From NCBI GenBank assembly GCA_965655095.1, contig OZ296655.1, positions 25,606,001-25,670,000 on the forward strand: a stretch of 64,000 nt of DNA, read 5' to 3'. The notes under the pieces are model-generated. The model made no database searches. It worked only from the letters and a program-made list of their open reading frames with translations, and was not told the origin of the DNA. This document shows, one piece after another, positions 40,619 through 61,300 of the stretch. Made by a program: the position numbers and the translations under genes. The DNA is from Haplodiscus bocki. Taxonomy: Eukaryota. Position 1 is the first letter of the stretch. Each line of letters begins with the position of its first letter.

Positions 40619-41795
40619 ATGCCCGAGGATTGATGCCATTTTTCAGGCAAACCCGGCACTTCAAGTTTTGGGCCTCTGGCAGCTTGTTTCCTGCGCGCAG
40701 AAAACAAGCTGGAAATTGAGTTACCACAAAACATGTGAAAGAACGAACACCAGCCTATTTTCTGCATTGAAAACCAGGCTGCTACCGGTTTTCCCTCCTG
40801 AGTAGGAAACATCAGGAATGCCCGAGTCTTTGTGCCAATTTTTAGGCGAACCCGGCAGTTCGGGTTTTGAGGCCCTGGTACATGAATTCTTTTGCTAAAA
40901 AAGGGGCTCGTTCTTGCACTACCACAAAACGCGGAAAAGAACACCAGCCTATTTTCTGCATTGGAATCCAGGCTGTTACCGGTTTTCCCCGTTGAGTAGG
41001 AAAAAGCAGGAATGCCCGAAACTTTGTGTCATTTTTCAGGCGAACACACCACATCTAGTTTCTCAGCCTCTGGCACATTTTTTCCCGTTCGAAAAAAGGG
41101 CTCGTTTTTGAACTACCACAAAACGCGGAAAGGGACACCAGCCTACTTTCTGCATTGAAATCCAGGCTGTTTCCGGTTTTCCCCGCTGACTAGGAAATAG
41201 CAGGAACGCCCGAGTCTTTGTATCAATTTTCAAGCGAAACCGGCAAAACTACTTTTTCAGACTCTGGCACATTCTTTTCCGTGCGAAAAAAACGGGCCCG
41301 AATATGAACTACCACAGAACACGGAAAGGAAAACTAGCCTACTTTCTGCCTTCAAATCCAGGCTGTTACCGGTTTTCCGCGCTGATTTGGAAACAGCAGG
41401 AATGCCCGAGTCTTTGTGCCATTTTTCAGGCAAACCCGGCACTTCGAGTTTTGAGGCTCTGGCAACTTCTTTCCTGTGCGAAAAAACGAGCTGGATTATT
41501 AATTACCACACAACACGGAAAAGAACACCAGACTATTTTCTGCATTGAAATCCAGCCAGCTACCGGTTTGCCACGCTGAGTAGGAAACAACAAGAATGCC
41601 CGTGCTATTTTTCAGGCGAACCCGGCAGATTGGTTTTTGAGGCTGAGGCGGCTTGTTTTCTGTGCCAAAAAAGGCTCGATTATGAACTACCACAGAACAC
41701 TGGAAGGAACACCACCTCATTTTCTGCATTGAAATCCAAGCTGTTATCGGTTTTTCACGCTAAGTAGGAAATAGCAGAATGCCCGAGTCTTTTTG
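40619..41795 (+). repeat. ~195-bp tandem satellite, 6 diverged copies
   Basis: An ATGCCCGAG-like anchor occurs at ~40619, 40818, 41012, 41206, 41402, 41596 and 41779. All copies share a GAACACCAGCCTATTTTCTGCATTGAAATCCAGGCTG block. Confidence 0.95.
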
Positions 41796-41799
41796 TCAC

Positions 41800-42490
41800 T
41801 TGATGCAATTGCAAAGTTAACTCCGGGCTATCTGACTGAGTCTAATGAAACCTCAATGTTCATAGAGTTTGACCTAGGAAATTTTCTTGGAAAACAACTT
41901 GCCGGTATGTGTAAAAAAATTATTGGTATCTGAAATTTTTTCTCAGAGAAACATTGCCAGTCTTTAAGAAATGACTCAGGTTAGAAATTTTGGTTGAAAA
42001 ATCGACTGTCGCCAAAATAAACACTGTTTCGTGGAAATCACAATGATACAACCGCCAAGTTACGATCGGGATATCTGACTGAGTTTAATGAAACTTCAAT
42101 GTTCAAAGAGGTTGACCTAGGAAATTTTTTTGAGAAAGACAGAGCCTGCATGTGTAAAAATTTATTGGGATCATCGATGTAGAGATAATCTAATAAACAG
42201 CATTTTTATATTGACCGAGTGAAAAAACGACAACAACTAGTTGTTATGATTTTTTAAATTGAAATGCTACACAACAGTATTCAAGAGGAGCTGATCAAAT
42301 GTCGATTGAAAACGAAAACGAGTATCAAAACGATCTCTTTGATTCTTGTACGTCCGGATGACCTGAGACAGATGTAATTTCCGGATTTGTTAATTAGGGT
42401 GACTAAAAATTCATTAACCGAAGAGTTTGACCTAGGAAGTTTTTCTCAGACAGACAATGCCAGTATCTAAGGACTGACTCAGCCAACAAA
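41800..42490 (+). repeat. ~505-bp repeat family (GAGTTTGACCTAGGAAA family), ~1.4 rearranged copies
   Basis: It has the same blocks as 56681-58349: GAGTTTGACCTAGGAA, GCCAAAATAAACACTGTTTCGTGGAAATCACAATGAT, TGTCGATTGAAAAC and CATTAACCGAAGAG. Confidence 0.92.
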
Positions 42491-42825
42491 CAGAAATCGG
42501 TACTTTTATTTGATTGGTCGATAGGTTTAATTAATTTTTATTTTAATCTTTCAGATTTGGTGACGGCGGCCAATCGGAACTTCAATTTGATTGGACGAGA
42601 GATTTAATCAATTTCATTTAATTTATTCATTTTATCTTTCGAAGCCGGTGAACTGTTTGTGACTACCATGGTATCTACAAGACTCTTGAGAACTACCTTA
42701 AAAGCTGCTTCAAAAAATCCAGTGGAGAGATCAGAGCAAACATGTCCACCCAGGTCAAAATAATGGCCGAAATTTTAATATAAGGGCGTTAACGGCGATC
42801 AAAACTAGCCACAGAAGCCGTTTTT

Positions 42826-43170
42826 AACCGGAAAAATAGCGGCGTTAACGGCGTTTAACCGGAAAAATAGCAGCGTTAACGGCGTTTAACCGGAAAAATA
42901 GCGGCGTTAACGCCGTTGTACCGGAAAAATAGCGGTGTTAACGGCGTTTAACCGGAAAAATAGTGGCGTTAACGGCGTTTAACCGGAAATATAGCGGCGT
43001 TAACGCCATTTTACCGGAAAAATAGCGGCGTTAACGGCATTTAACCGGAAAAATAGAGGCGTTAACGGCGTTCAACCGGAAAAATAGCGGCGTTAACGGC
43101 GTTTAACCGGAAAAATAGCGGCGTTAACGGCGTTGAACCGGAAAAATAGCGGCGTTAACGGCGTTTAACT
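42826..43170 (+). repeat. 31-bp CpG-rich minisatellite, ~11 copies, with partial outliers at ~42785 and 43733-43806
   Basis: The unit AACCGGAAAAATAGCGGCGTTAACGGCGTTT repeats with a 31-bp period. Confidence 0.97.
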
Positions 43171-43200
43171 GGACAAAGTCAAAGTATCAGCATTACACTA

Positions 43201-43737
43201 AAAGTTTAAAATAGAAAGACCTTCCGAAAAAACGGATTTAACGGGGAAACCGTTTGAAGCTTCAGACTAAAAAAAAACAGAAAAAAGATTCTCGACCTTG
43301 CACAATAAAACAATTGGACGCAAGGATTCTGAAAGCAACAAATTAACATTTCTCCTGCAAACAGTACGGATTAAATTAAACAAAACTTGAAAGAAAGCAT
43401 TCAGATAAAAACTGTTAAAATTTTGCAAAACTGGAACTAAGAAGTCAAGTCCTGACATGTTCAACTTTGATGTAATCTTGGCTGGTCATGACATGGTCAC
43501 TAACGCTGGCAGGGCTACCACGTGCAGACGCAAATTCAAAGCCCCATGCTTACAAACAAAAGTTCAGAAAATGAAGGACCTTCCGAAAACATGGGTTTTA
43601 ATGGGAAAACAGTTTGAAGATTCAGGACGATAAAAAGAACAGAAACATTGTTCTCAACCTTTCAGAAAAACCCGGTCGAACATAAGGACCCTAAAAGCAT
43701 CAGTTGAACATGGCCCTCGTAGACAGTAAGAGTTAAA
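43201..43737 (+). repeat. Old ~180-bp direct duplication (43201-43375 and ~43559-43737)
   Basis: AAAGTT...GACCTTCCGAAAA...GTTTGAAG-TTCAG...AACAGAAA...TTCTC-ACCTT...AAGGA...AAAGCA...ACAGTA...TTAAA is colinear in both copies. Confidence 0.75.
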
Positions 43738-46559
43738 CGGCGTTCCTTGTTGGTATTGAGGCGTTAGCGGCGTTTACGCCACTATACCGGAAAAATAGCG
43801 GCGTTTTCCCAAAAAATTTGACCCGGGCAATTGGGCTGGGTGTATTTTGTCGAGAAACTATTAACATTAAGAACCATCATCATATCTTACTCATTTTTGA
43901 TATTATCAAAACTTTGATTTTTGTCAATTTTATCAACTGTTTCTTTGTTGAAATGAGTGTACTTGATAAGACTATCTACAAAAATAAACGAATAGATACT
44001 AATTGAACTTCATTTTCTTGAAAATGTCTTTCTCTGAGTAATCAAAAAAACGTGAGGAGAGAGTCTTGACCGGTTCATCTCAGTTCTCTGTACGGTATTA
44101 CTGGTGGGTGCTGATAGACTGAACTGTAACAGCAGTAAATTAGAGCAAAATATCTGATCCAGAATTTTTTTCTTTCAGTTTGCTAAACTCCCTCCAGCCA
44201 TTTTTGTGGGATGCTTTGGAGGTGAGTTTCTCCCATGTGAAGGAAAAGTAGACGGATTTTCATGGTAGTTTAGGCTTCTGTCAATCAGTTAACTAGATCT
44301 GAGAAAAAGCTAGTCAGTTTTTTCCCAAGTCTTTCTGGACTGCAACTTTTCTTTATTTCCAATAGGATAGTGAAGCAGTCGAAAATGTTATCTCTTAAAG
44401 CATTTTTACTCCTTTTATTTTTCAAATATGTAATTTTTGTACCACATTGTTTTATCACTTCCAAGCATTTTAAATTTCTGGTTGGTTCTCGATTTGATTT
44501 TTTAAGCAAATTGGTTTGTCAAACGATGAGTCAGTTGGGAGGAGACGAGGTTGACTTTTCAGTTACCAATTTTCACACCTCAGCAAAAACTCAGGTTGGT
44601 TATTTACAAATTATGTACGTTTCAATCTGCATCAAATCACTGGTCCTAGGTTCGGAGACCATTGAGATGAGTATTACTTTTACGATCCAATCAGTTTTCC
44701 TACCTGATCCCTAGTGTTATCAATCAAAGTTAGACCTGTGGTGCCTGGATTTTGACGGGCAAATTCGCTCTTTAGGTAACTGTTAAAATATTTGTCGTTT
44801 TATAGAATAGGCTGAACGAAATATTTTAATGCAAGGTAATTCTGGCCTGGGTTCTCTCTGTCGGTTTCCCATATCAAAAAGATTTTTGGACTCTGGCTTT
44901 ATTTACACAGGAAAAAGCATCCTGGATGAAATCATTCGGATACCGAAGTTCAAACGATGTCAGTCACTAAACCGGAAAAAAATTATTATGGGAAATCATC
45001 GAAACCCCCTTGATCCTTGTAATTTATTTCTTGGTGTCACTAATGTATGCTCTTGCAAGTACTCAGTTTTGATTCATATCAAAAGTTCAGGAGATCTTGT
45101 TTGCTTCTATTTTTTTTTCGTTTTTCGAAGGGCCGGAGCGAAGACCTAGAGTTGACGGGCACAACTGCAGAAAACCTTGTCAGGACACCCGGAAAGTTTC
45201 TTGAGGCTCCCTCAGCAAATTCAACAGAAAACTCTTCGCTTACCACTGCAGAGCCGACAAGATCAAGTGGTCTCGATATAATTGACGTTGGTGCGATTGC
45301 AGAACCCCCAGATAGTGCGTTAGGGGAAATGAATGTTGCCAACAGATAAAGAAACAAACATTTCGATAGTGTTTTGACTCAAATAAAAAGAACAAAAGTT
45401 CAAACCAAGTTATTTGTTTTTCCGTCAGCAAATTGAATACTGTGAGGAAAAGACTGAAGCTGCGAAAAAGAAAGTTTTATGAGCTTGATTCTACGGTCCA
45501 ACTGCGAACTAGCGTTGGAATGCTTGAAAAACACATTTCTATTATAAGCAGTGATGAATTTGATTACTATCGACTTGGACCAAACGAGTCACCCACCAAG
45601 AGAAACAAAACAGCTCGGAAAACAAAAACTACTGCGACGTCGCAAAGTGATGTTATCAGAGATCTGAAGAAAATCTCTCGAATATGTGGTTTTTGTTTGA
45701 TTGCAGGTTTCGGTAACGTCAAAATGGTATCTTTAAATGACTTTGAACGGGCGCTGAGCAAACAAACTAAGGTGACGTCCAAAAACTGGAAAGAACACTG
45801 GTCCCAACTTGACCATCAAGGTCGCTGTGAAAAACTCAGTAGGAAAAAGTCTGAAGCTCACCGAAGAGTCATGCAAGTAATCAATTTTGCCCCCGGACTG
45901 CCAACCCGGAAAAAACTCTTCTGAGAAAGTCAAGGATGTCAGACAAATGACGACTTGGTCTCAATCTTTCACAAATGATTGGCGAGGTTTTGCGGAGTGT
46001 AACGCAGACAAGAAATTGGCAATTCTGATGGAATCAGGGCTGTCAACAAGTTTTGAACTGCTGGCCGAACAACTTCGATTGTCCAGTTCACAGCCTGAGA
46101 GTTGCCCACCTGAAACGATCTCTATAGATGGAGAGGCAAATGGTGTGAATCACTTTGTAGCTCGTCATCTGGATGAAACATTCAGCAGAAAAGCAGAACC
46201 CAATTTAAATGAGAAAGAGTTTCTAGAATTGTTACAGAAACTTTTCGTCAATAAAATCAGTAACTTCGGGGACTTTTCAGTCCAAAGAGTGCTTCGTTGT
46301 CGAGAAGCCCTTCGGAGAGAAAAGAGAGCAAAAGCCTGGCCAATTTCTCTGGAACCATTGCTTAGTGGCTTAGGCTTTACATCGTCGATTCCTACTAGTA
46401 AATTGATGAACGATTTCATCAAATCATGTATAAAATCTATGAGTTCAGCAACAGGAGACAACTTCGGTTACCTAGAACACGAAATTAGCTTCGAGACACA
46501 GAAATTGCAAGTAGTTTTTGAGTTTATTATTAACCAAGTTTTGAGTCGTGAATCAGAAT

Positions 46560-47660
46560 TTCTCAGTTTCAATGAAGCTAATGACAAAGAAGTCTGGTTA
46601 CGTATTTATCTACAGAACGCCAACAGCTTAAATAACAATTTTATCAAGGCTTTGAAATGTTGCTGGTTCAAGCGAGAATCAATCAGACACTTTTATCTTC
46701 GTATGTTTGACTTTCGTAGGTTTTTGGAAGAAACTGGTTTGCAAAAAAGATTGATATGGCTGAAGCCCGTTTGGACAAAGAAGCAGCATTTTTATGGTTG
46801 CAGCAATTGAAGATGGATGATGTCAGCAAAATTAGAGGAACGGAAAATCATCTTGGAGTTAAAATGCAACAGATCGGGAGTCGATTATTTAATTCGACTC
46901 CTGAAAAAAATGGTGCGAGCTCAATCACTATTGTGAAGCTTTGAAGCACGGCACAAAAGACACTAGAGGGGCAGATGAAATATTGAAGACACTGGAACCA
47001 TCTTCAGAAGAAGTTCTCGATTTTCAAAACTTCTTGCTGGCAAACTGCCTTTATTTCCGTCCACATAGACCTGGCATTTGTTCCTCGCTCACAGTTTTCC
47101 ACTATGAAAATGGATTGAATATTGATAACGGCTACAAGATAGTGCCTGTGACAGATAACAGCAAGACAGCAGCGCTCAATTGTGAATATTTGCTCACCGA
47201 ACCTGAAATGGTTAGCTACTTCAACTTTTACAGAGACTCGCTAAGATTTCCTTTGGGAGAGACAGATTCCGATGATTGTAACAACTGTCAGCTTGAATTT
47301 CGATGGCCACTGGATATGAAACTAACCAAAAACAAAATACGTTCTTTATTGTGTTTGAACGATGGAGAAGACGGAACGGAAACTTCTACTGGAGAAACTC
47401 AAACGCAATCTTTTCTTTTCCAGACTGTTAGAGCTGCTAGTTTTTTTGCGAACTCAAATTGCTCTGTTATTACGAATACTACGAAGTTTCTCAAAAAGAA
47501 GACTGCCTCACATGGGACACACTTGATGTTTGGTAATCAATTCACGTCAATGGATGCAAAAGAAATCCATAAGCAATTCGCAGACTTTCTCAATCAACAA
47601 AAGAAACTGACTGACAAGGACTACATAGAGTACATCGGCTGTTTAAGATTATTTTCACTG
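46560..47660 (+). pseudogene. Tyrosine recombinase-like region (core-binding-like helix plus a degenerate catalytic domain)
   Basis: Motifs occur in YR order. FIKALKCCWFKRESIRHFYLRMFDFRRFLEE resembles the core-binding domain. FLLANCLYFRPHRPGICSSLTVFHYENG supplies the first catalytic Arg (codon 47067) and IVPVTDNSKTA the Lys (47163). FFANSN follows. THLMFGNQFTS has GGT at the second-Arg position (47532). FADFLNQQKKLTDKDY has H-x8-Y spacing, with CAA at the His position (47595) and Tyr at 47622. Motifs were recognised by eye with no HMM search. Confidence 0.6.
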
Positions 47661-48301
47661 TTTGACAGAAATGAATATTCGAAACCCAGCAAGAAAATGT
47701 ATGATATGATATCAGCAGTGGAAAAATTCTCAAACCAAGCTTATGAACATCAAGCAGCACTTGAAGTTAATATCTTGAAACTGATAAAAAATGGAATTTG
47801 GCAAAGCGACCCCTCTGAGAAGCTATTCCAGTGCTGTTGAAGATAGCTTCAGTGACCAAGTTGGAACGAGTGCCGGAAACGGGCTAGAAGAAAGTTATCA
47901 AAGTATGGATTTAAACTTCATTGCAAGGCACTTTGCAGACAGAAAGATTACAGATGCGAGTTTGGTGGAAAAATTCAAACAATATTCAACAAGCCACTAT
48001 GCAGAGGGATTGAAAAAGAAATGGTTGAAAAAATTCAGCGTCGAGAGTTTCTTTCAGTCAAAAGAAAAAATGGCACTTCCTTCTTTTGGTAGATTTTCTA
48101 GACGACACGGAGAAGAGAAATGGAAAATACAATTCTTTCCGCGGTAAATTGATAGTGCAATTCAAAAATTTCCTTGTCAATGAGTCGATTAAAAAGAAAA
48201 CTGATCAGTTCGAAGAGTTAATCAACGGAGAGGCAGTAACCACTAGACGGAAATAAGAAGATAGAGCCGAAGACTGGATCCACAGAAAGGTTCATTAAGT
48301 T

Positions 48302-49204
48302 ATGGAGGCCAACAAAGACTCAATGAGTAACAGAAAAAAAGTCCAGGACAAACTAATTGAACGATTATTGAAGCAGAAGAACTACGGCACTGCTGGAAAG
48401 TCAAAAAAGGACTTCAATGGCTTGATTGAAGTTAGCAGCCATTACAGTGAGTTCTCAAAAGCAATTCGTGGTACAATTCCCTTTGATCTACCTCGGCGTG
48501 AAATTTTCCTGAAAATCAAACAGCAGAGATGGTCAGATCTATTAGTCAGGCTAAGCGAGAAACCAGAGCAGAACAGAGGTCTGTTTGCAATGCAAAACTT
48601 TGAAAAAGGGGAGTACGTCTGTGACTACCATGGTGTTTATATCACGCTAAAAACCTATTTGAACGAAACTTTTCAAACTAGAAACGATGATGTTCTAATG
48701 AATAAATACATTCTCACTTTGCCGTCTTTCGATCCCTACCATAAGCGGTTTGATCGAATCAAAATCAAATTTGGAGAAGAGTGTTCTGAAGAAGATGTCT
48801 TCAAGCATTTCAAGGAAGACGAGATGGAGAAGATTGTCGCCATCGATGCTGGTAAACTTTGTGAGTGTCACGGTGTTTCACCAAAAGGAGGAAAAACTAA
48901 TCATTCTCATTCACAGAGGGAAATATATTTGAAGCCGGAGTATTTGACATTCTTCGGACATTTCGTATGTGTTTTCAAAACAACAAAGTTTGTTCGGAGG
49001 AACGATCAGTTCTTCTGGCAGTACAACACAACTTTGTCTTTCAAGAAGAAAATTTCGCTGGGAAAAACTTCGACTTCAGTTTTTTTGATGATAAATGCTA
49101 CTTTCAACTCAGCAAAAATATCACCCAAATTTTTTTATGTAATTAATCGAAACGTGTTCAGGTTACCTGCCACTTCGACCAATTATTTGAAATTTAATTT
49201 ATGA
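48302..49204 (+). pseudogene. SET-domain lysine methyltransferase-like ORF (PR-Set7/SETD8-like), probably the C-terminal fragment of the larger frame
   Basis: SET motifs occur in order across ~48540-49030: RGLFAMQNFEKGEYVCDYHG, KYIL, AIDA..CECH, GGKTNHS (canonical GRxxNHS), and VFKTTKFVRRNDQFFWQYN (canonical xFxAxRDIxxGEELxYDY). Several canonical residues are substituted. Confidence 0.85.
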
Positions 49205-49339
49205 ATTTAACACCTTTCTTAGCGACCACTTCATGTTACGGATTTAATACATCTCTGTTCTGCCTATCATACAATGCATTATTGCAGTAATTCAGTTTTA
49301 TAGCCCATACGATCATCATTTTTGTCAGGAGATAGTGAT

Positions 49340-50035
49340 CCATTGAAGATTGAAAACAGAACCGTTTAGGCACAAAAAACTGGTTCATGGATTTCTGGTT
49401 GACCTACCGCAGAATAGCTTCGCAGAAGTTCGATTGTGTTTGCCCAAAAGTCCCTATCCGAAAAGTCTGACCTAGAAAAAATTTCCAGAATAATATTTAA
49501 CGGTGTATAAAAACACTATGAAACGGTAAACTGATGGGAACAACCAGGCTGATATTTTTCGGGAGGTGGCTGCTTTGAATAGCCTGATAAATGAAAAAAG
49601 ACATCAATTAGTTTACTGCGGCTTTGAAAAAGCGAGCCAAACTACGAGCCAAAACTCAGAAGCTAATGATCCTCTTTCGATTGAAAACAGTACTGAAAGG
49701 GCGCAAAACAACCGGTTCCGGATTTTCCGGATGATCTCCCTCACAAGAGTTTTCCCGAAGTGTCATTGTGCTTGTCTAAAACCCGACATTCGAAGAGCTC
49801 CATCTAGGAAAATTCACTGGAAAAAATTTTACTGTATTTAAAAAATTTATGAAACGATAATCTGATGGGATCATTCACGTCGCTTTATTGAAATGGCATG
49901 GCTTACATAGCTTAAGAAATGATATAGACATCAAATAATGTACTGTGGCTTTGAACCGTCGAGCCAATTTAAGCGCCAGGAAACAGGAGCTAGTCATCCA
50001 TTCTCGATTGAAAACAAGATCGAGTATCAAACAGA
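49340..50035 (+). repeat. ~330-bp diverged tandem repeat (2+ copies), related to the ~505-bp family
   Basis: GATTGAAAACA occurs at ~49348, 49679 and 50006. Shared CTAG(G/A)AAAA, TATGAAACG..CTGATGGGA and GACATCAA..TACTG.GGCTTTGAA..CGAGCCAA blocks are present. The last copy runs into the 505-family sequence CGAGTATCAAACAGA. Confidence 0.8.
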
Positions 50036-50574
50036 TGTCGCGTTATAACTAACGCTTGATCGTTATATGTTATATTTTATTTCTTAAATGCGTGCAGTAA
50101 GCTTTTAAACAGGAAATGAATAATGTTTAACAAGAGAACTGCAAATGGTATTGACTAACCTGGGAGTTGCTGTTAATGTTGGTAAATGGTAAGAAAGCTG
50201 AAAGATTGGAATTGCACAAAGAGAAAGAAAAGCAAAATTTCTAAAAGCGCGGAAATGTGGTTGAATACGATTGGCGCAACGACTAGTTACGAAGATGTCG
50301 TCATAACTTCGTTTCCTCGTTGATATGGGAAAGCGGCTTGGCCATTTTTAATTCACTCGCTTACCGGCCGGCAGACATATTCCTTTCCCTTATTTCACTT
50401 CCCTTTCCTTACGCCTCGCTTTCTTTTCCTTCTTGCTTGGCCAAATTTATTCTAAATTCTCGTCTTTCTCTCCGCGGACGGAATTATTCTAAGACAATTC
50501 TTGCTTGCTTTACTTACAAATTCCGCCGCTTACAGACCCAACCGTCCAACTCTCCACTTCTTGCCAAATGATCT

Positions 50575-50652
50575 GATTGGCTCTCACTTAAACGGCGGCC
50601 ATCTTGAAAATTCAAGTATAAATAACCGGCACACAGCCATAGCATTCATTAC
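50575..50652 (+). promoter_or_regulatory. Pol II core promoter module 1: inverted CCAAT box, YY1-type site, TATA box, Inr
   Basis: GATTGG (50575), CGGCGGCCATCTTG (50593-50606), TATAAATA (50617), and TCATT with its A at 50648, 31 nt from the first T of the TATA box. Confidence 0.7.
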
Positions 50653-50728
50653 GCTTTCGAGCCTACTTCCACGAGGCGAAACTCTCTTTCTCTTCTCTCT
50701 CAACATAATTTCGGAGTTAAATCTTTAC

Positions 50729-50944
50729 TCCGAAATTATTCTAAGACAACTTCAAAACTTGTCTTAGCCAAATTCTTATCGCCTCTTCGAAATTATTCTA
50801 AGACAATTTCAAAACTTGTCTTAGCCAAATTCTTATCGCCTCTTCGAAATTATTCTAAGACAATTTCAAAACTTGTCTTAGCCAAATTCCTATCGCCTCT
50901 TCGAAATTATTCTAAGACAATTTCAAAACTTGTCTTAGCCAAAT
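50729..50944 (+). repeat. 57-bp tandem repeat (~3.8 copies), each unit with a 9-bp inverted repeat
   Basis: The unit is TTCGAAATTATTCTAAGACAATTTCAAAACTTGTCTTAGCCAAATTCTTATCGCCTC. CTAAGACAA and TTGTCTTAG flank a 9-nt loop. Confidence 0.95.
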
Positions 50945-50997
50945 ATTCTGCTCTACAGAACCAACCTTCCTGCTCTCCAATTCTCACCGAATGATTT

Positions 50998-51076
50998 GAT
51001 TGGCTCTCGCCTATACGGCGGCCATCTTGGAAGTATCGAGTATATATACCCGGTGCACGGCCATAATATTCATTCG
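50998..51076 (+). promoter_or_regulatory. Pol II core promoter module 2 (diverged duplicate, 424 bp downstream)
   Basis: GATTGG (50998), CGGCGGCCATCTTG (51016-51029), TATATATA (51041), and TCATT with its A at 51072, again 31 nt from the TATA start. Confidence 0.7.
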
Positions 51077-51174
51077 CTTGCTACTGTCAACTACCAACTT
51101 CCCCGAGGCGAAACTCTCTTCCACCTTCCTCTCATCAATATTCTGGAATTATTCAAAGACTCTTCAACAACCAT

Positions 51175-51562
51175 CCGAAAATATTCAAAGACTTCTTCGC
51201 CTGCAAATTTGTCTTAGCCGCAATTCATTCACAACCCGAAAATATTCAAAGACTTTTTCGCCTGCAAATTTGTCTTAGCCGCAATTCATTCACAACCCGA
51301 AAATATTCAAAGACTTTTTCGCCTGCAAATTTGTCTTAGCCGCAATTCATTCACAACCCGAAAATATTCAAAGACTTTTTCGCCTGCAAATTTGTCTTAG
51401 CCGCAATTCATCAACAACCCGAAAATATTCAAAGACTTCTTCGCCTGCAAATTTGTCTTAGCCGCAAATCATCAACAACCCGAAAATATTCAAAGACTTC
51501 TTTGCCTGCAAATTTGTCTTAGCCGCAAATCCTCAACAACCCGAAAATATTCAAAGACTTTT
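51175..51562 (+). repeat. ~61-bp tandem repeat (~6.4 copies), related to the 57-bp unit
   Basis: The unit is CCGAAAATATTCAAAGACTTTTTCGCCTGCAAATTTGTCTTAGCCGCAATTCATTCACAAC. Confidence 0.95.
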
Positions 51563-51566
51563 TGGG

Positions 51567-51787
51567 CAATCAACAAGCAGCAACCAGCAGCAGCAATCAA
51601 CAGCAGCAACCAGCAGCAGCAATCGACAGCAGCAACCAGCAGCAGCAATCAACAGCAGCAACCAGCAGCAGCAATCGACAGCAGCAACCAGCAGCAGCAA
51701 TCAACAGCAGCAACCAGCAGCAGCAACCGACAGCAACGGCCAGCAGCAACAATCAACAGCAGCAATCAACTACAGCAACAACCAGCC
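51567..51787 (+). repeat. CAG-rich 26-bp minisatellite
   Basis: The unit CAGCAGCAACCAGCAGCAGCAATC(G/A)A starts at 51601, 51627, 51653, 51679 and (variant) 51705, with G and A alternating between units. Confidence 0.93.
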
Positions 51788-53370
51788 TTCGTCCTACCAG
51801 CACCACTTCCACAATCCACGACGACCCACGTTAGATAACATTACGGTTCCTAGCACTGGCTACGTCCTGCTAGAAGTTGATTTAGGATTAGCCGCCCGGT
51901 TGCGAGTGCAGTCACCGTTACCGAGGACCATTTTTGTGACATTTTGATTTTTCTGAAATTCCCCTTTTCCGATTTTCCCTTTTTTTTCCTAAGACGTAGT
52001 ACTAACTATTAACCGGTAAAAGTAAAACTTTATTATTCACGACCTATTGGCAGTCCCTATGACGTATGCCTTGGTCGCAGATAAAAGAGACTAAATTCAT
52101 TGCTGGTTTCCCGTGGGTCCGGACTTTATCGGCAGGGACTAAAACACCAGTTTAAGATTAAGACCCTATTTGGGAGTCATTTTTTATACTAAGAGTAGTG
52201 TAAAATGCATGTAATGTAAAATGCATGTAAATTGAACCCCCTTTCCCTACAGTCTGGCCTATCCAGCTTGGGACTAAAACAGGGGCTAGTCTTTTTTTAC
52301 CCGTAAATCCTAGTTCATCTAGAGAGACGGGTATAGCTAAACGTAAAACAAACTGTAAAATGGCGGGCTAAAGAAAGCCGACCAGAGATAAGACGGGATT
52401 TGTTCGCCACCCGCACTGGTCAGAAAAGTAAAATGATGTATGTGAAACGTTTTGACTATTATCAGGCAGTGGATGTGGATGTGGATGTGGAATAAATTAT
52501 AATTTCGATGTTTAAAAGTTTTAATTTATAATTCTAAATTTGTTGGGACTAAATTTGAATAGTCCAAGAGTGTATTTGCGATGATTCATTTATAATTCAA
52601 CTGGACTAAATTCAACGAGTCCAATTTTTATTCATGAGGTTTCAAATCCTAAATTAAATTTAATTCAATAAATTTGACTTTTATACCTAACTCCAAAATT
52701 TCAATTCAGACTAAATTAAAGTAGTCTAAATTGGTGAATATTGGTTGCATTTATAAGTTTAATTCAGGTTAAATTAAAGTGGCCTGGATTATTTTATAGT
52801 AATTATATTTCCACTCCTAAATTAACTTGACGTTAATTAATCGTTAATAATTGTGGCTCCCCCATATACTCTTTGAATGATCCTCTGACTTCTTGTTTAA
52901 TAATTTTCTGGTCGTTATTAATTGGAATTGAAATGATGAATTAAAAGTTTAAAGTCTGATACAAAATTACAAATGTTGCTAGAGATAATGTTGAATTCGT
53001 AGTAAAGTAAGAAGAGAGTTTGCTGTAGTTTAGAAATTATAAGACCGTATGGTGGATTTCCCTGTGCTGTTCCACGCTTACAATTTGGTAACTTCCCCCC
53101 GCGAATGTGCAGCCATTCAAATTCAGAAATTTGGTAAGCCGGAATATATTCGCTGACAACCTAACAGTCTTCCTTACCATTTCCCACTATAGCTCAAAGT
53201 CCTTGCTTGAATTCACGCAATTCCTTTGTTCGCACGGTTAAGCAAGGCACACCGTTGAGACTTGTAAATAATAGCCATCGCTATAACGCTGTAGTGCTGG
53301 CCTAGTTAGCCACCGGCACAGCTAAGTAAATATTAGGTTTGTAATACCAATACCCCTACCACGTGCGACA

Positions 53371-53862
53371 CAGAACTCATTGATTCTTGTCTTTCCCGAT
53401 TACTTGCAGCAGTATTGAGTTCCGGATTCGTGAAAAAGTTGCTTAAAATTCCATTAAAAGAAGAGTTTGAATTGGAAAAATTCTCAGAGAAACATTGCCA
53501 GTATCTAAGAAATCACTCAGCCAACTAAAGTCCATTGCATAACCGAACGTTGCCAAAATAAAGACTGTTTTGTGGAAATCGCAATGATGCAACCGCGAAG
53601 TTAAATTCGGGATTTCTGATTGACTTTAATGAAACTTCAATGTTCAAAGAGTTTGACCTAGGAAATCTTTTAGGAAAAGACCTAGCTTGTATGTGTAAAA
53701 AACTATTGGGATCATTGATGTAGACATAATCTAACAGATAACATTTTTATATTGACCCAGTGAAAGAACGACAACAGCTAGACGTTATGAGATTTTAAAT
53801 TTAACTACAATGCTACACAACAGTAATCAGGAGGAACTGATCAAATGTCGATTGAAAACAAG
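53371..53862 (+). repeat. ~505-bp repeat family, one unit (continuation of the unit split by the LTR-like insertion)
   Basis: It is colinear with 57100-57595, from CAGAACTCATTGAT to TGTCGATTGAAAAC. Confidence 0.92.
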
Positions 53863-53899
53863 ACCTGCAATTAATATGTAGTTTTCATCCGCTAATGAC

Positions 53900-55800
53900 C
53901 AGGGACTGAATTTAATGCCAAAGTTAAGTTCTTCAACATGAAAGCTGCATTCAGCCGTTGCAATAATTTATGTTGAACATTTGTTCAAATTGTTACACAG
54001 AAGCAAATTAGGAAAACTTTAAACTGAAATGTAAATCATGCTGGTTTTAGGCAATTTCTCAAAAACTTTCGCAGTCAAAACTGCAGCCTAATTGATATAT
54101 GCACAGGGAAAATCTTTTTTCTAATGGTATGTAAAAAACTTCAATAGTTGTTCGCGTCTTGTGAAAGTTTCATCAGATAAATTGATTCTCAGAACTCAAT
54201 GTTTATCTTGAGTTTCTTTCCAGAAGCTGTTATCAGATATTGAAATTAATTGAAGTTTTCTGAGCAAATCAAAAGCATACATCAATCAGTTACACTTTGG
54301 CGGTCTTATCCACAAAAGCAACGAAAGTTTAGATTTCAATGATTTGATGTAAGCAAGCAGTGTTAAGTTCGATTCTTTTGCTGCAATATCTCAGCACTTT
54401 AGCATCATAGAGGAGGTGTTCATCCAAAATAAGAATCCAGGAACCGAGTCAAATCCTTGGTTGGAGAATATTTCACGTCTATTGATTGTAAAGAGTACAG
54501 AGCAATCAATATCTTGCTGTGTTAGGCGGAACAAAACAGGTACCAATATCTGAGTCTTCTGGCCGTGGCTTTTCACGAAGAGGTCATGAATTCCCCCCAA
54601 CTCAACTCCAATGACTCAAAATCTTCATTGGTTTGGGCTTTCAGAACGCTAAGTTTTCCTGAAGAAAAAAAAGCATACAAAAGCTTTTGAAAACACACGA
54701 CTGAAGATTCAAAATCATGCCAAATAAACATATTTTTGTCGGTGGGTTGAAGGGTTCCTTCCCAATTCATAACCGATAACCTTTTTTTCTTTTAAAATGT
54801 TACAAATTTCAAAAGACTGTATTCCTGACCGTTTCCGCTGCATTACGTCAAAAATTAAATGAGTTTATCTTTTCTTTTGTATATCTTTCCGTTAAAAAAA
54901 GCAAAACTTACCATGATGATTGCAAAAATGACAATTCTATGGCAATGTCTGAAACTTTTTGACGTAATTTGGGCCACCAAAAGTTTTTCATTGCCTCCAG
55001 CATTTGATCTCTGCTTATATGCCAAAAATGTAGGGATCGGAGCAAAAAAGGCTTCAGCAATTTAAGAATTACGAGTCTCCCATCGCAAAAAATGAAATTA
55101 TTTCGATCAAGGGACAATGCAGTAATTTTTTTCTCCATGCTGACGGAAGTTTGTTAACTTCAGCTTTATCTGGTTTTCTCAGGAGTTCAATGATTTTTTG
55201 AAGTTTTGAAGCTTCTCCATAACTAGACGCAACAATATGTTCAAACTAACGTTTGGAAAAGAGATTACAATTATCCAATTTCTCCACAGGTTTGAGCACA
55301 GATGAATCTCGAAATACCACTCTTCTCCATTTCTTCTTTTTTTATTTTTGATTTTTGGTGGAGTTTTTGTCAAGTTCCTTTTCTGTCCACCCAATGACTC
55401 CATCATTTACTCGAGTAAGTTTTGCCACATTTCTCTAAGAGACTCACGCAAAAGCGGAAAAAATCAGTCAAGGAAATCTCCTAAACAATAGTTTGGTTGG
55501 TCTTTTCTTTCTTGATTGAATACAAAACTGTGAACACAAAATTCTATATATTGCAATATGTCCTTTTTTCCAGTGGTACCGGTTCGATTGCAGAACAAAG
55601 CGGCTCATGAACTTATGAGAAAGCACCGCACGTTTATTTGTCACAGGGAGCTACTGGAGAAAGTATTCTTACATACTCCCTTCAATTGGCGGTGACTAAT
55701 TCGTTGCTTTGTTCTCTACAGGACGAAGAGCAATAGAGACATTCAACGAATAAATCTTGTCTGCAAGTACTTGCAGCGTACACTGCTTTACTTCCCAAAA
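53900..55800 (-). pseudogene. Second, heavily decayed tyrosine-recombinase-like reading frame
   Basis: A hand translation of the minus strand gives FQKLLYAFFSSGKLSVLKAQTNEDFES (first-Arg box region, Arg missing), then a frameshift. One frame read through stops then gives LFVKSHGQKTQILVPVLFRL...NRREIF...FLFW...YAFDLLRK (Arg at ~54260)...REQLLKFFTYH*KKDFPCAY (H-x8-Y; His at ~54125, Tyr at ~54098). An upstream FVECLYCS (CxxC) lies at ~55735. Boundaries are uncertain. Confidence 0.45.
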
Positions 55801-56680
55801 TTTGTCAAATGCTTTTCATAAATTCTCAGGTAGAATAAAACGCTCAATATTTCGGGCGTGTTGTCTATACCTACTACAAGTCGGAAGTTTCATGTTCAAT
55901 TGAGATTTTACTTGGAGATGTATGGTGATTTGCGTTCTGTTTCTATTTTAAAACTCTGTTGAAATGAGAAACTTAAAACATAAGGTTGACATGAAAATAA
56001 CCGAAAGTGAATGTTCAGGTCGAGATACTCTTTGAGACTATATAGTATTTGTAGAACAAAAAAACACAGACAGATAAAAGAGCTGGACTTTCAAAACAAT
56101 GAAGCGTATTGTTTGCCGAAAACCAGGAGCCAGAGAAAGAATTTCAGTTAAAAAGGGCAACTTATGCTGTAAAAAAAACGTTGTTTCAGGCCATTCCCAA
56201 TGTTTTTCATCGTTATCATTTTCCGGAATTTCCACTCCACGTGTTGAAAACTTGGTATCCGAAGAGTTTTTCACAGAAAAACCTTCGGTCCTAAACTTTG
56301 TCAGCTTCCTGCAGCTACACGTGGAATTCCGGACCGAATGAGACCATTCATGTTGAGCTAATCTGATATGGTTTGTATTTAGAAGGAAAACTACCTAAAA
56401 AGTTGCATTAACACTTTAGAGCCAATGAGACAAATGGATCGCTAACAATTTGGCGACAGCAGAAAAACGTTCACTCAAAACGAGACCGATCAGGTAAAAA
56501 CTTTGATAAAGGGAATTCCCTACGAGCTCCAGTCTTAGTCGTTTCGGGATTTTTGGCTGAGAGTCTTAAAATTTCAATGTCAAAAAGTTTTACTAGAGAA
56601 AAACTCAATGATCCCTGTCTTTCGCGATGATCTATCGCAATACTGATATCCTGATCAGTGAAGAAGGGTGTATGAAGTTA

Positions 56681-58349
56681 CATTAACCGGAGAGTTTGAC
56701 CTAGGAAAAATTTCCCAAAGAAACATTGCCAGTGTCTAATCACTCAGCCAACTAATGTCGGTTGAAAAATCGAACGTTGCCAAAATAAAGACTGTTTTGT
56801 GGAAATCACAATGATACAATTGCGAAGTTAAGCTCGGGATTTCTGACTGAGTTTAATCAAACTGCATTGTTCAGAGAGTTTGAGCTAGGAAGTTTTTTGG
56901 AAGAGACCTAGCTTGTATGTATAAAAAACTATTGGGATCATTGATGTAGACATAATCTAACAGATAACATGTTTATACTGCCCGAGTGCAAAAATGACCA
57001 CAACCGAACGTCATGACTTGTCAAACTGAACTGCAATGCTACACAACAGTATTCAGGAAGAACTGATCTAATATGGATTGAAAAAGAAAACGAGTATCAA
57101 ACAGAACTCATTGATACTTGTACTTCCCGATGACCTCTAGCAGTTGTAAATTCCGGACTTGTTAACAATGGTACCAAAAGTTTCATTAACCGAAGAGTTT
57201 GACCTAGAAAATTCTTCTCAGTGAATCATTGCCAGTTTCTAAGAGATCACTCAGCCAACAAATGTTGGTTCGAAAATCGACCATTGCAAAAATAAACACT
57301 GTTTTGTCGAAATAACAATGATACAATTGCGAAGTTAATTTTGGGTTATCTGACTGAGTTTAATGAACTCTCAATGTTCAAAGAGTTTGACCTAGGAAAT
57401 CTTCTTGGAAGAGAACTTGCCTGTATGCGTAAAAAAGTTATTGGGATCATTGATTACGAGATAATCTAACAGATAACATGTTTATAGTGCCCGAGTGAAA
57501 AAATGACAACAACTAGACGTTATGACTTTTAAAATTGAACCGCAATGCCACACAACAGTATTCAGGAAGAACTGATCTAATGTCGATTGAAAACGAGAGA
57601 GTATCGAACAGAACTCTTTGATAATTGTACTTCCCGATGACCTGCAGCAGTTGTAAATTCCGGAATTGTTAATAAAGGTACCTAAGGTTTCATTAACCGA
57701 CGAGTTTGACCTTGGAAATTCTTCTCAAAGGATTATTGTCAGTTTCTAAGAGATCACTCAGCCAACAAATGTTGATTGAAAACGCGACCGTTGCCAAAAA
57801 TTAACACTGTTTCGTGGAAATCACAATGATGCAACCGCGAAGTTACGATCGGGATATCTGACTGAGTTTAATAAAACTTCAATGTTCAAAGACGTTGACC
57901 TAGGAAATCTTTTTGAAAAAGACAGAGCCTGTTTGTGTAGAAAATTTATTGGGATCATTGATGTAGAGATATTCTCACAGACAACATGTTTATTATGACC
58001 GAGTTAAAAAGCGACAACAACTAGACGTTATGACTTTTCAAATTGAACTGCAATTGTACACACAGTAGTCAGGATGATCTGATCTAATGTCGATTGAAAA
58101 AGAGAACGGGTATCAAACAGAACTCATTGATTCTTGCACTTTCCGATGATGAGCTGCAGTTGTTATTTGGGGATTTGTTGATAAGGGTGTCTAAACTTTA
58201 ATTGTATGTTGTGACCCACCATAGAGTCTGACCCACGAAGTTTTTTCTCAGAGAAACATTGCCAGTATCTAAGAAATGACTCAGCCCTAGAAATGGTTGA
58301 TGAAAACGACCGTTGCCAAAATGAACACTGTTTCGTGGAAATCACAATG
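56681..58349 (+). repeat. ~505-bp tandem repeat, ~3.3 copies
   Basis: A GAGTTTGACCT-like unit start occurs at ~56693, 57195, 57703 and 58224. A second, internal GAGTTTGACCTAGGAA lies ~185 bp into each unit. Confidence 0.95.
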
Positions 58350-61300
58350 TCTATCTTGGAAAAACAAAAAGTTATGGAGCTAGTATTAAGATTTTTGACA
58401 AACTTTCAAGCAAAAATTCAGTAAAAAATTCCATTTAACTCTGAAAATCTTTTTGTCTAACAAAGATAGAAGGTTGGTTTGCCAAAGTTTTTTTGTCTCA
58501 TCAAGTTGTACTTTGTGTCGTTTTTTGATCAAGGTGGTATAAAAAAAAGGCGCAGCGAAAAACTTAGGTACCCCAAACATAGGTACCAATTTTTTTTGCT
58601 CCTTAACTTTTTGTAATGTGATATTTGACAAATTTGAAGCTGAAAATCAGTCAAAACTCACATTTCAAGCTCAAAAACTTTTTGTCTAGTTGAGATAGAA
58701 GGTTCCGTGACCCCTGTTTATTTCGTCATCTCAATTTCAGCTTTTCGTCAAAATGTGGCGGAGATTGCAGATGTAGAAAAAAACGGAAAGCAGAAAAACT
58801 ATAGGCACTTCTAAGGACTGTACCGAAAGTTTTTTCCTTCGCGTTTTCTCCTATTTATACCAATTTCACCAAAATAGACACAAAATACAACATGAGGAGA
58901 CAAAAAAACGTGTGGTCAAAAAACCTTCTGTCTTTGTTTCACAGAAAGGTATTCTGCTCTAATTGTGACTTTGTACTGAATTTTTCTTGAAAGTTTCAAA
59001 ATTCATATTACCAGCTCCATAACTTTTTTTCTAAACAAGATGAAAGGTTGATTGACACCGTAATACTTCAGTAATTTCATGTTAAATTTTGTGTCAAATT
59101 TTGCTGAGGATCGGGGGAGCAGAAAAAGTTCGAAGCAGAAGACTTTTTGAATTTGTAAGTTGTGGAAAATTGTGCTTTCTGGAAAATTCTGCAAAGTCCT
59201 GTGTTTTGTTCGTGAAATGACACCTGTTTGACATCTAGTCATTGCAAATGCCAAGAAATCATTTTTTCCATCTAATTCCACCATCCATAGCAATAACAGT
59301 TGAGTTAAAGTCACTATAAAATCTCGAACTCAAAAAAGCCTAAGTTCGGTTTCCGTTTCGGTTCAACCAATTTCTCGCAATATGATTGGCTGCCGGCAGG
59401 AAGTAGCTGGTTTATCTGAAATTTGATTGGACAAGACGTTTTCCAGGCAAGATCAACTCACCTCACCGTTACCAATTTCCAGGCTCAGTGAACAGTTTTC
59501 CGGGCAAGATAGTAAACATTTTTCAAAAAGCTTTTGCACTCACAGAACCCGAAACGTGTTGTCCAATCAAACATTAGATAAACAAGCCATTTCCAGTTGA
59601 CTGACAATCATAATGAGAGAAATTGTTTGAACCGAAACGAAAATCCAACTGAGGCTGTCTTTTTGAATTCGGGTATCTTTAATGAGTTTAAGTCAACTGT
59701 TACTGCTATGCATGGTAGAGAAAAGTGAACGAAAAAGTTTTGCTGATCACAATGAAAAAATGATAAGTAGGTGTGTTTTCACGAAAAAACAGAGGGCTTA
59801 GCAAAATTTTCCTAAATTCGCAACTTTCCACAACTTATAAGAAAATGAAGTCTTTTGCTGGGAATTTTTTTCTACTCCTCCGACCTTTACCAAAATTTGA
59901 CACAAAATTCAACTTGAATTTACAAGAAATTGCGGTGTCAAGGAACCTAATACGTTGAACAGACAAAAAGTTACGGATAAGGAATTACGAATTTTGTCAG
60001 ACTTTCAAACAAAACTTCAGTAATAAAAATCAAAAGTAGAGCTAAATAACTTTTTGTCTAACAAAGATAGAAGGTTCGCTTACCAAAAATTTTTTTGTCG
60101 TGTCAAGTTGTACTTCCGCGTCAATTTTTGGTTAAAGATGGAATAAAAATGAAAAAAAACGCAAAGCAAGAAACTTTAGGTAACCCAATCATAAGCAACG
60201 AAGTTTGAAGCTGCTCAGTTTTTTGCACTGATTGGATCTCTACCATTTTTTGACTTAAAAAAAGTTGACAAGGTAAAAAAAACGCTGGGTCAAAAAACCT
60301 TCCATTTTGAAAAGACAAAGAGTTTTCAAGCTAGAGAGGCCTGTTTTGACACACTTTGAAGCTAAAAATACTCAAATCTCAAATTTCAAGCTCAAGAACC
60401 TGTTGTCCAGTTGAGATAGAATGTTCGCTGAACCCTTGTTTTTTTGTCATCTCAGTTTAAACTTTTGGTCAAAATGTGGTGAGATTGCAGATGTGGAAAA
60501 AATTCCAAGCAAAAAAGCTATTGGTACTTTGAAAAGCTGTACCGAAAGTTTTTTGCTTTGCGTTTTTTTTACTTTTTATACCAGTTTTACTAAAAAAAGG
60601 CATGAAATAAAACATGAGGAAACAAAAAAACGTGTGGTCAACAAACATTCTGTCTTTGTTAGAAAAAAAGGTTTTCTACCCTAATTGTGATTTTTTTCTG
60701 AACTTTTGCTTGAAAGTGTGTCAAAATTCATATTACCAGCTCCATAACTTTCTGTCTATACAAGATAAAAGGTTGGTTGTCCCCGCGTTTTTTCAGTAAT
60801 TTCATGCTGAAATATGTGCAAAAATTGGAGGAGCAGAAAAAAGTTCGAAGCAACAGATATCTTGAGCTTGTAAGTGGTGGAAAGTTGTGTTTTTTAGGAA
60901 GTTTTGCAAAGTCCTGTGTTTTGTTCGTGAAATGACACCTGTTTGACATCTAGTCATTGCAAATGCCAAGAAATCATTTTTTCCATCTAATTCCACCATC
61001 CATAGCAATAACAGTTGAGTTAAAGTCACTATAAAATCTCGAACTCAAAAAAGCCTCAGTTCGGTTTTCGCTTCGGTTCAACCAATTTCTCGCAATATGA
61101 TTGGCTGCCGGCAGGAAGTAGCTGGTTTATCTGAAACTTGATTGGACAAGACGTTTTCCAGGCAAGATCAACTCACCTCACCGTTACCAATTTCCAGGCT
61201 CAGTGAACAGTTTTCCGGGCAAGATAGTAAACATTTTTCAAAAAGCTTTTGCACTCACAGAACCCGAAACGTGTTGTCCAATCAAACATTAGATAAACAA

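Follow-up and report, generated by a model that had tools for sequence, protein, structure and literature searches.

The 64,000-nt window analysed here (the whole stretch of Haplodiscus bocki DNA, OZ296655.1 of GCA_965655095.1, positions 25,606,001-25,670,000 of the forward strand) contains at 43832-50035 what we read, with a probability of roughly one half, as the dead copy of a low-copy 6.2-kb unit (unit A) that holds one intronless gene of ~1,340 codons and is the relic of a Crypton-like, recombinase-only element. The order of domains along the window ORF is a zinc knuckle, a helical core-binding-like region, a recombinase-like domain, a linker and a C-terminal SET domain. The features of the region, with the evidence for them in brackets, are the following.

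51-40267, no strand assigned: 76-bp satellite array with strong GC skew, given as context (TRF)
40619-41792, no strand assigned: 194-bp satellite, ~6 copies, given as context (TRF)
41801-42746, + strand: left flank of all three copies, made up of ~1.4 units of the 505-bp family (to 42490) and ~250 bp (blastn of the window against L001/L002, self-comparison)
42747-43831, no strand assigned: 1.09-kb segment present only in the window copy, including a 31-bp tandem repeat (42823-43177)
43832-50035, + strand: unit A, repeated 6.2 kb, left edge sharp (91.6-92.2% identical to L001:5781-11549 and L002:7748-13935)
45044-49072, + strand: decayed single ORF, ~1,340 codons (comparison with paralogues)
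45682-45828, + strand: putative zinc knuckle, CxxC-x34-H-x6-H-x3-C (conserved in L003, tblastn E 3e-7)
46720-47837, + strand: tyrosine-recombinase-like region with a helical N-part (motif register; without HMM or fold match)
47055-47075, + strand: HRPG, with the candidate box I Arg (conserved in relatives)
47157-47168, + strand: NSKT, with the candidate catalytic Lys (conserved in relatives)
47277-47288, + strand: CxxC insert in the recombinase-like region
47442-47462, + strand: FFANSNC in the recombinase-like region
47559-47561 (within 47553-47570), + strand: Lys aligned to the second Arg (three-lineage alignment)
within 47667-47687, + strand: Tyr of NEY (three-lineage alignment)
47788-48475, + strand: linker from the recombinase-like region to SET (weakly conserved in L003, E 6e-6)
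48572-49024, + strand: SET domain core with RGLF, DYHG, IDA..CxCH, NHS and WQY
49325-50035, + strand: 3' tail of unit A, a tandem pair of ~330-bp units, both diverged members of the 505-bp family
53375-53863, + strand: lone 505-bp monomer

In the window, the gene is broken into eight ORF pieces, all on the + strand (45044-45346, 45370-45921, 45881-46807, 46720-46941, 46905-47837, 47788-48144, 48029-48253 and 48299-49201). Comparison with the paralogue L001, where the first five pieces form one unbroken 909-codon ORF, joins them into one former reading frame. The original prediction had proposed six same-strand fragments amounting to ~1200 codons; the same-strand join held, and the counts were corrected to eight pieces and ~1,340 codons. 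A three-way alignment located six frameshifting indels specific to the window copy (45413, 45908, 46743, 46909, 47788 and 48088), and the single in-frame TAA lies at 45347, so that the copy is indeed decayed, as had been proposed. The ancestral stop at ~49070 is TAG in L001 and L002 and TCG in the window copy. Because Logan contigs from four runs and two samples contain the window version, with zero differences across the lesion sites, the lesions are not slips peculiar to the assembly. The dN/dS values (0.38 for L001 vs L002 and 0.61 for L001 vs the window) were below those of shifted-frame controls (0.70-0.93), which speaks for a coding history of the ORF. About three copies are present in the genome (the window, L001 and L002), and variant contigs in the same read runs agree with L001/L002 at 36-38 of 40 sites; this multi-copy, intronless ORF differs from a single-copy host gene with introns.

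The order of zinc knuckle, recombinase-like domain, linker and SET recurs in three lineages: the window with L001 and L002; L003 and L008, which are ~30% identical to the window lineage and likewise decayed; and P0010, an intact ORF of 1184 residues. This recurrence bears out the proposed joining of recombinase-like and SET parts in one ORF. Collinear tblastn matches to L003/L008 were obtained for the zinc knuckle (E 3e-7), the recombinase-like region (8e-14), the linker (6e-6) and SET (7e-25). The CxxC..H..H motif noticed earlier was located at 45682-45828, and L003 has it as well; as a putative knuckle it would bind zinc, and the N-terminus of P0010 may carry a compact version. No other domains were detected in any unit A ORF, nor in the 909-residue and 1184-residue ORFs. 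In the literature searched, we found no paper describing a recombinase+SET element.

By sequence criteria, the family has a genuine SET domain at its C-terminus. Against a Pfam gathering cut-off of 22.4 bits (PF00856), the window ORF scored 21.5 bits, just below it, and the relatives scored 31.6 (L003), 28.9 (L008), 47.6 (L009) and 42.5 bits (P0010). The cofactor and catalytic motifs RGLF, DYHG, TNHS and WQY are all present in the window (48572-49024). A SET profile built from the three lineages reached 57 distinct PDB sequences at E<0.1 and, among the matches listed, almost all were SET-domain methyltransferases. These results agree with the clear SET domain of the original prediction, and the PR-Set7/SETD8 type that it brought up was recovered for the intact relative P0010. 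The protein of that type, KMT5A, is the H4K20 monomethyltransferase. The SET domain of the intact P0010 is KMT5A-like: its best PDB matches were a Cryptosporidium SET protein (4ldg, 1e-7) and KMT5A/SETD8 (3e-6), aligned over the full length and well ahead of other SET subfamilies. In contrast, the SET of the window lineage carries an insert of ~45 residues and a family-specific IDA..CxCH motif and matches KMT2/EZH2 about as well as KMT5A, KMT2/EZH2 being the best PDB matches of the window's own domain, with weak E values (0.02-0.5).

Indirect evidence points to a possible tyrosine-recombinase identity for the middle region. The HRPG and SKT motifs singled out in the original prediction were found, and both are conserved in relatives. 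The similarity of this region across the three lineages is significant: in Smith-Waterman comparisons with the recombinase-like region of P0010, L001 reached z 5.2 (equalled by 0 of 1000 shuffles) and L008 z 4.8 (1 of 1000). P0010, L003 and L008 keep the canonical succession and spacing of Arg, Lys, Arg and His-x8-Tyr; P0010 and L008 are without the first His of the catalytic set R-K-H-R-H/W-Y. For the window lineage, an alignment is possible for Arg I, Lys and Tyr, and Arg II is replaced by Lys and His II by Leu in 3/3 copies. This alignment of candidate catalytic residues is based on motif register and on non-significant hhalign comparisons (P 0.26-0.75 against four known recombinases), in whose register the HRPG Arg falls on lambda Int R212; by eye, 'NGYK..V..NSKT' resembles the lambda Int 'DGYL.V.QSKT'. 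It had also been suggested that one-base lesions, R>G and H>Q in H-x8-Y, had struck two catalytic positions. The Gly and the Gln are indeed there, yet all three copies have them, which makes them features of the lineage and not what killed the window copy. The three-lineage alignment places the second Arg, the second His and the Tyr elsewhere, and the two positions were probably mis-assigned.

The large satellite array at whose edge the element had been placed corresponds to the 76-bp array (51-40267); unit A itself starts ~3.5 kb past that edge, behind the 194-bp array and a 505-bp repeat. Its only sharp edge is the left one, at 43832. Where the window has its 1.09-kb segment, L001 and L002 have an unrelated 532 bp, and the left flank beyond is common to the three copies. 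L001 and L002 further agree over 5-7 kb upstream and carry the same nonsense codon. On the right, the tail of unit A in L002 continues in phase into a 505-bp monomer, and the lone monomer at 53375-53863 is the original right neighbour of unit A, from before a 3.3-kb insertion. The gene lies between arrays of one 505/330-bp repeat family, and tandem repeats adjoin it in all three lineages.

The common flanks, the nonsense codon common to L001 and L002 and the low copy number are also what would be seen if unit A were not a transposon. It could represent a lineage-restricted, host-derived or long-domesticated gene family with a non-catalytic, DNA- or chromatin-binding recombinase-like domain, comparable to DUF3504 in vertebrate genes derived from Cryptons, duplicated segmentally and now reduced to pseudogenes, a reading that we consider rather unlikely. 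The replacement of the second Arg and second His in 3/3 copies and the dN/dS <1 are consistent with it, and recombinase-derived domains that have lost the catalytic tetrad are documented (Kojima and Jurka 2011, PMC3212892). The window lineage resembles the DUF3504/Crypton-derived genes (ZMYM2-4, QRICH1, KCTD1, KIAA1958) in having lost part of this tetrad (Arg II to Lys, His II to Leu); however, no Pfam DUF3504 match was obtained in the window family, and the window-lineage copies are pseudogenes lying in repeats instead of conserved host genes. All the copies in this genome are broken, as are L003 and L008, and the species yielded no intact one. A 4-kb ORF without introns, located among satellites, also argues against a host gene, as does the retention of Arg, Lys, Arg, His and Tyr in P0010 and L008.

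A second alternative is that the middle region is unrelated to tyrosine recombinases and that the gene encodes a chromatin protein with a zinc finger, a SET domain and an unknown helical domain, whose recombinase motifs are there by chance. In favor of this, a recombinase fold or profile match for the region, as the original prediction would have it, was not obtained. The window, L001, L003, L008 and P0010 gave no recombinase HMM match in Pfam, PHROGs or NCBIfam at E up to 10, and phmmer and profile searches with the same five, including the intact P0010, gave no recombinase structure in the PDB. The AlphaFold2 models (pLDDT 36 and 31) were too low for fold comparison; in the first, the order of a helix, three strands and a helix around box I is compatible with a recombinase at low confidence. 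Nonetheless, we regard chance motifs as unlikely, more so than a domesticated gene family, since the motifs appear in canonical order and spacing in two lineages and, in the best hhalign register, the box I Arg meets lambda Int R212. Moreover, in L009 and P0010, weak matches to the SAM-like N-domains Phage_int_SAM_4 (E 0.057) and Phage_int_SAM_5 (E 0.42-0.68), below cut-off, fall exactly upstream of box I; in the window lineage, no Pfam match to a SAM-like core-binding domain was found. ESM neighbours point mostly in the same direction, with scores of 0.86-0.89 that, being <0.9, count as leads only by the tool's own rating: the nearest named clusters among those listed were Phage_integrase, ResT-TelK_cat, MrpR_C_cat, NDC10_II and Integrase_1, all of which we take to belong to the recombinase superfamily, and PF20278 (CTD2), which we left unplaced.

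It is very improbable that unit A is half of a larger DIRS/Ngaro-type composite retroelement that includes the block at 54417-56600, with the 505-bp repeats as terminal repeats: the 505-bp family does stand on both sides of both blocks in the same orientation, and in L001 and L002 unit A has the second block upstream of it, but this block is on the opposite strand and carries an Integrase_H2C2 relic of the retroviral type instead of a tyrosine recombinase, the 505-bp repeats are arranged in tandem arrays, no RT/RNase H belongs to unit A, and no such partner is present in 5 kb upstream on the P0010 contig. RT/RNase H domains were absent from unit A, L001, L003, L008 and L011, which upholds the earlier view that the element is not DIRS-like. 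The sole nearby RT, in L002, belongs to an insertion of its own within the neighbouring block.

The favored reading, a relic of a Crypton-like element, can be set beside known systems. Like Cryptons, unit A has one long ORF with a core-binding-like helical region before the recombinase-like domain, and it is without RT/RNase H and without inverted terminal repeats. Animal Cryptons are described without a C-terminal domain and without terminal repeats, and some Cryptons carry extra fused domains, such as a C48 peptidase in the oomycete CryptonF (Kojima and Jurka 2011, PMC3212892). The window unit differs in its C-terminal SET, in being bracketed by a tandem-repeat family and in a recombinase domain too divergent to match PF00589. 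Other cases combine a chromatin writer or reader with a mobile-element enzyme in one polypeptide: in SETMAR, a mariner transposase was captured by a host SET gene, and chromoviruses carry a reader, the chromodomain, on a DDE integrase. Here, in contrast, a writer (SET) is joined to a tyrosine-recombinase-like enzyme inside the repeat unit itself.

As to mobility, the ~3 copies have their left flank in common instead of showing the same ends at unrelated sites, the mark of transposition, and no termini, target duplications, empty sites or independent insertion sites were seen among them. What stands of the proposed decayed tyrosine-recombinase DNA element is a decayed multi-copy gene with a recombinase-like region; given this common flank and the lack of an HMM or PDB match, its recombinase identity and mobility were not established. 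As a Crypton-like element, the ancestral protein would have excised and re-inserted the element by site-specific recombination, probably acting within or beside the flanking tandem repeats, and its KMT5A-type SET could have methylated histone or further chromatin proteins there; any targeting of satellites would be equally hypothetical. The present copies were probably already dead DNA when segmental duplication within repeat-rich heterochromatin multiplied them, because the second Arg and His are Lys and Leu in all three and L001 and L002 have a nonsense codon in common. Tentatively, and as a possibility to which we give considerably less weight than to the Crypton-like relic itself, the family may represent an undescribed clade of eukaryotic tyrosine-recombinase elements with their own KMT5A-type SET, living in or generating tandem-repeat arrays, in which the recombinase would recombine at the flanking repeat and the inserted element would receive a heterochromatin-type mark from the SET domain.

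The plus strand of unit A, the repeated 6.2-kb unit of the window, contains eight ORF pieces between 45044 and 49201. To reconstruct their relationship we used two paralogous contigs from ENA assembly ERZ26859043: L001, which came up when the last ORF was used in a word-based homologue search, and L002, reached by a second search. Their segments L001:5781-11549 and L002:7748-13935 share 91.6-92.2% identity with unit A. In L001, one 909-codon ORF spans the first five window pieces, and the three-way alignment revealed window-specific indels that shift the frame at 45413, 45908, 46743, 46909, 47788 and 48088. The fragments therefore join into one gene, as the original prediction had proposed. 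Directly after codon 909, L001 and L002 have in common a TAA in frame, at the position of GAA in the window; past this codon their frame runs on into the linker and the SET part, and the ancestral stop lies near 49070, giving approximately 1,340 codons. The TAA was considered as an intron signal and discarded, since it is a single-base difference from the window GAA and the frame continues. With one nonsense codon (45347) in addition to the six frameshifts, the window copy is dead, a pseudogene, also as predicted.

The lesions were verified in four runs (two samples of one study and one organism), whose Logan contigs include stretches that match the window exactly over the frameshift sites. 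The same contigs hold a second variant that shows the unshifted state at the window indels and has the L001/L002 base at 36-38 of 40 sites, so ERZ26859043 comes from the same or a very close species. The lesions are thus genuine, and the family comprises about three copies. The dN/dS values in the true frame (0.38 for L001 versus L002, 0.61 for L001 versus the window) were lower than those in the shifted frames (0.70-0.93), which indicates that part of the divergence arose under coding constraint. No RNA run containing the stretch was found.

Relatives in other assemblies were sought with natural sequence pieces throughout. Word-based homologue searches returned the paralogues only, and when the window recombinase-like ORF was run with HMMER against the complete set of 1.84 billion representative proteins, the only hits were the query itself and P0004, an 89-residue fragment (E 1.5e-4). 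This fragment led to L003, which together with its near-twin L008 comes from ENA ERZ25071359. These two contigs are 96.5% identical over 13 kb and, given that the identity extends to the flanks, represent alleles or a recent duplicate. Their gene is decayed and collinear with the window gene, matching it in the zinc knuckle (E 3e-7), the recombinase-like part (E 8e-14), the linker (E 6e-6) and the SET domain (E 7e-25). A search for relatives with the recombinase-like alignment found none, and the SET alignment had no match among viral contigs. When the SET alignment was used for a pattern scan of metagenome contigs, it picked out L009 (MOXH01000831.1), whose protein cluster includes P0010, an intact ORF of 1184 residues; L009 itself carries a 99%-identical copy of this third-lineage gene with frame breaks. 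P0010 is encoded on L011 (JBEVXV010000513.1), a 9.27-kb contig filed under a Sedimenticola MAG, where it is annotated as 'SET domain-containing protein-lysine N-methyltransferase'. With 41% G+C, many repeats and just one further called gene, this contig probably represents eukaryotic DNA misbinned into the bacterial MAG.

The presence of a SET domain was upheld. The window ORF scored 21.5 bits against Pfam SET, slightly under the 22.4 cut-off, and its relatives scored above it (L003, 31.6; L008, 28.9; L009, 47.6; P0010, 42.5). A three-lineage SET profile matched 57 distinct PDB sequences at E < 0.1 and, among the matches listed, almost all were SET-domain methyltransferases. The P0010 domain aligned over its full length with both KMT5A/SETD8 (E 3e-6) and PDB 4ldg (1e-7), with E above 1e-3 for other subfamilies. 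The window domain, which is more divergent than that of P0010, contains an extra stretch of about 45 residues as well as the family motif IDA..CxCH. The PR-Set7/KMT5A-like character originally proposed applies to P0010; the window's own domain matched no one subtype clearly.

The evidence for assigning the middle domain to the tyrosine recombinases is indirect. Searches of Pfam, PHROGs, NCBIfam (E up to 10) and PDB (phmmer and profile) with all the recombinase-like pieces and the intact P0010 yielded no significant recombinase match; pairwise Smith-Waterman comparisons with lambda Int, Cre, XerC and XerD reached a z of at most 2.3 against shuffles; and AlphaFold2 models were unusable (pLDDT 36 for the recombinase-like region, 31 for the SET ORF), the alignments being too shallow. 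The alignment of the family with a small profile of the same four recombinases in hhalign was not significant and only its register is informative: the top register places the Arg of the window-lineage HRPG over lambda Int R212. The 'NGYK..V..NSKT' stretch that follows HRPG resembles the lambda strand-turn bearing the catalytic Lys. In L003, L008 and P0010, Arg...Lys...Arg-(His)...His-x8-Tyr appear in the canonical order, and the motif spacing of P0010 is at most one residue off that of XerD. Weak matches to Phage_int_SAM_4/5 lie exactly upstream of box I in L009 and P0010. The nearest named ESM-Atlas clusters, among those listed, were Phage_integrase, ResT-TelK_cat, MrpR_C_cat, NDC10_II and Integrase_1, which we take to be recombinase-superfamily families; their scores (0.86-0.89) serve as leads only. 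Within the family, Smith-Waterman comparison of the recombinase-like regions of L001 and L008 with that of P0010 showed significant similarity, at z 5.2 (0 of 1000 shuffles reached the score) and z 4.8 (1 of 1000), respectively. This indirect evidence is coherent, and we give the recombinase fold a probability of about 0.6; the identity that had been predicted is plausible and unproven. A CxxC plus aromatic-Pro motif (CKNC..F.[WY]P) is located inside this domain, after the Lys hairpin and before the helix that follows (window 47277-47288, L008:8419-9090); it is conserved in the window lineage and L008 and missing from P0010.

It had also been proposed that two catalytic lesions, R>G (in THLMFG) and H>Q (in the Q-x8-Y ending DKDY), probably killed the window copy. 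We observed the same residues in the window, L001 and L002, so they cannot have done so. In the nearly gap-free three-lineage alignment, 40 residues separate the second Arg position from the Tyr in both L001 and L008; the second Arg faces a Lys (in DAKEIH), the second His faces a Leu and the Tyr is at NEY. Judging from this alignment, the catalytic site of the window lineage had apparently already degenerated when the three copies diverged. DUF3504, described as a recombinase relic without the tetrad (Kojima and Jurka, PMC3212892), is a precedent for such a site.

The gene lies among the following repeats.

Repeats and units of the window
51-40267: 76-bp satellite with strong GC skew
40619-41792: 194-bp satellite
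41801-42490: 505-bp repeat, about 1.4 units
between the 505-bp units and 43832: 1.09-kb segment, specific to the window, that contains a 31-bp tandem repeat
43832-50035 (plus strand): unit A, 6.2 kb
49325-50035: 3' tail of unit A, two 330-bp units belonging in diverged form to the 505-bp family
50036-53369: 3.3-kb insertion between the unit A tail and its 505-bp neighbour
41801-42490, 53375-53863 and 56602-58349: short tandem arrays of the 505-bp family, on both sides of unit A
58352-64000: tandem repeat with a period of about 1.72 kb

Since the tail consists of 505-bp family members and 505-bp units occur on both sides, one repeat family in direct orientation brackets the gene. Either an element recombined into the 505-bp satellite, or the satellite grew from the ends of the element. 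The left edge of unit A is sharp at 43832, and the segment to its left differs (1,086 bp in the window versus 532 bp in L001/L002). Two observations speak against mobility. On the left, all three copies have the same context, 505-bp units with a common end point and about 250 bp more. L001 and L002 additionally have in common 5-7 kb upstream and a nonsense codon; therefore, at least this pair is a duplication of dead DNA. In L002 the unit A tail continues in phase into a 505-bp monomer, from which the 3.3-kb insertion parts it in the window. Tandem repeats adjoin the gene in the two other lineages too: an array with a period of about 1.08 kb (L003:1-7586, L008:1-6029) ends about 100 bp upstream of the ORF, and on L011, 80-bp and 235-bp repeats adjoin the gene, the latter directly after the P0010 stop. 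The mobile recombinase-SET element originally envisaged is thus partly supported: the fusion gene is real and conserved as a family, one member of which is intact, and the window copy is dead, whereas mobility stays hypothetical.

The 3.3-kb insertion is bounded by a 5-bp direct repeat (ACAGA), encloses tandem repeats with units of 57, 61 and 13/26 bp as well as an ORF rich in Gln (51562-51834) that has no Pfam match, and is missing from the corresponding L002 junction. The 1.72-kb-period repeat, with 92% identity between neighbouring units and minus-strand self-matches as well, stands in place of unit A beyond the second 505-bp array. The minus-strand block 54391-56341 was considered as a second tyrosine-recombinase relic and rejected, because it contains the zinc-binding domain Integrase_H2C2 of retroviral type (17.8 bits; 31.9 bits in its equivalent, L001:2562-2807), and is therefore a relic of an LTR-retrotransposon integrase. 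In L002 only, this relic is interrupted by an insertion (L002:2726-4097) that carries a reverse transcriptase (RVT_1, 91.5 bits). Rfam and tRNA scans of window 40000-64000 found nothing.

The closest named kind of element is the Crypton, a recombinase-only element whose animal members are described as having neither a C-terminal domain nor terminal repeats (Kojima and Jurka, PMC3212892). Literature searches for a SET-bearing Crypton or a recombinase plus SET element found no description in the library covered. To our knowledge, few mobile-element enzymes have a chromatin-modifying domain of their own. For annotation, the window holds a pseudogene copy, and the 'SET domain protein' of the bacterial MAG is probably eukaryotic repeat DNA. 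If the recombinase reading is true, one protein would unite DNA recombination with methylation of histones (or of other lysines), and it would be possible to test directly whether an element determines the chromatin state where it inserts, and also whether satellite DNA is seeded or targeted by elements of this kind. With the intact P0010, no reconstruction is needed for these tests.
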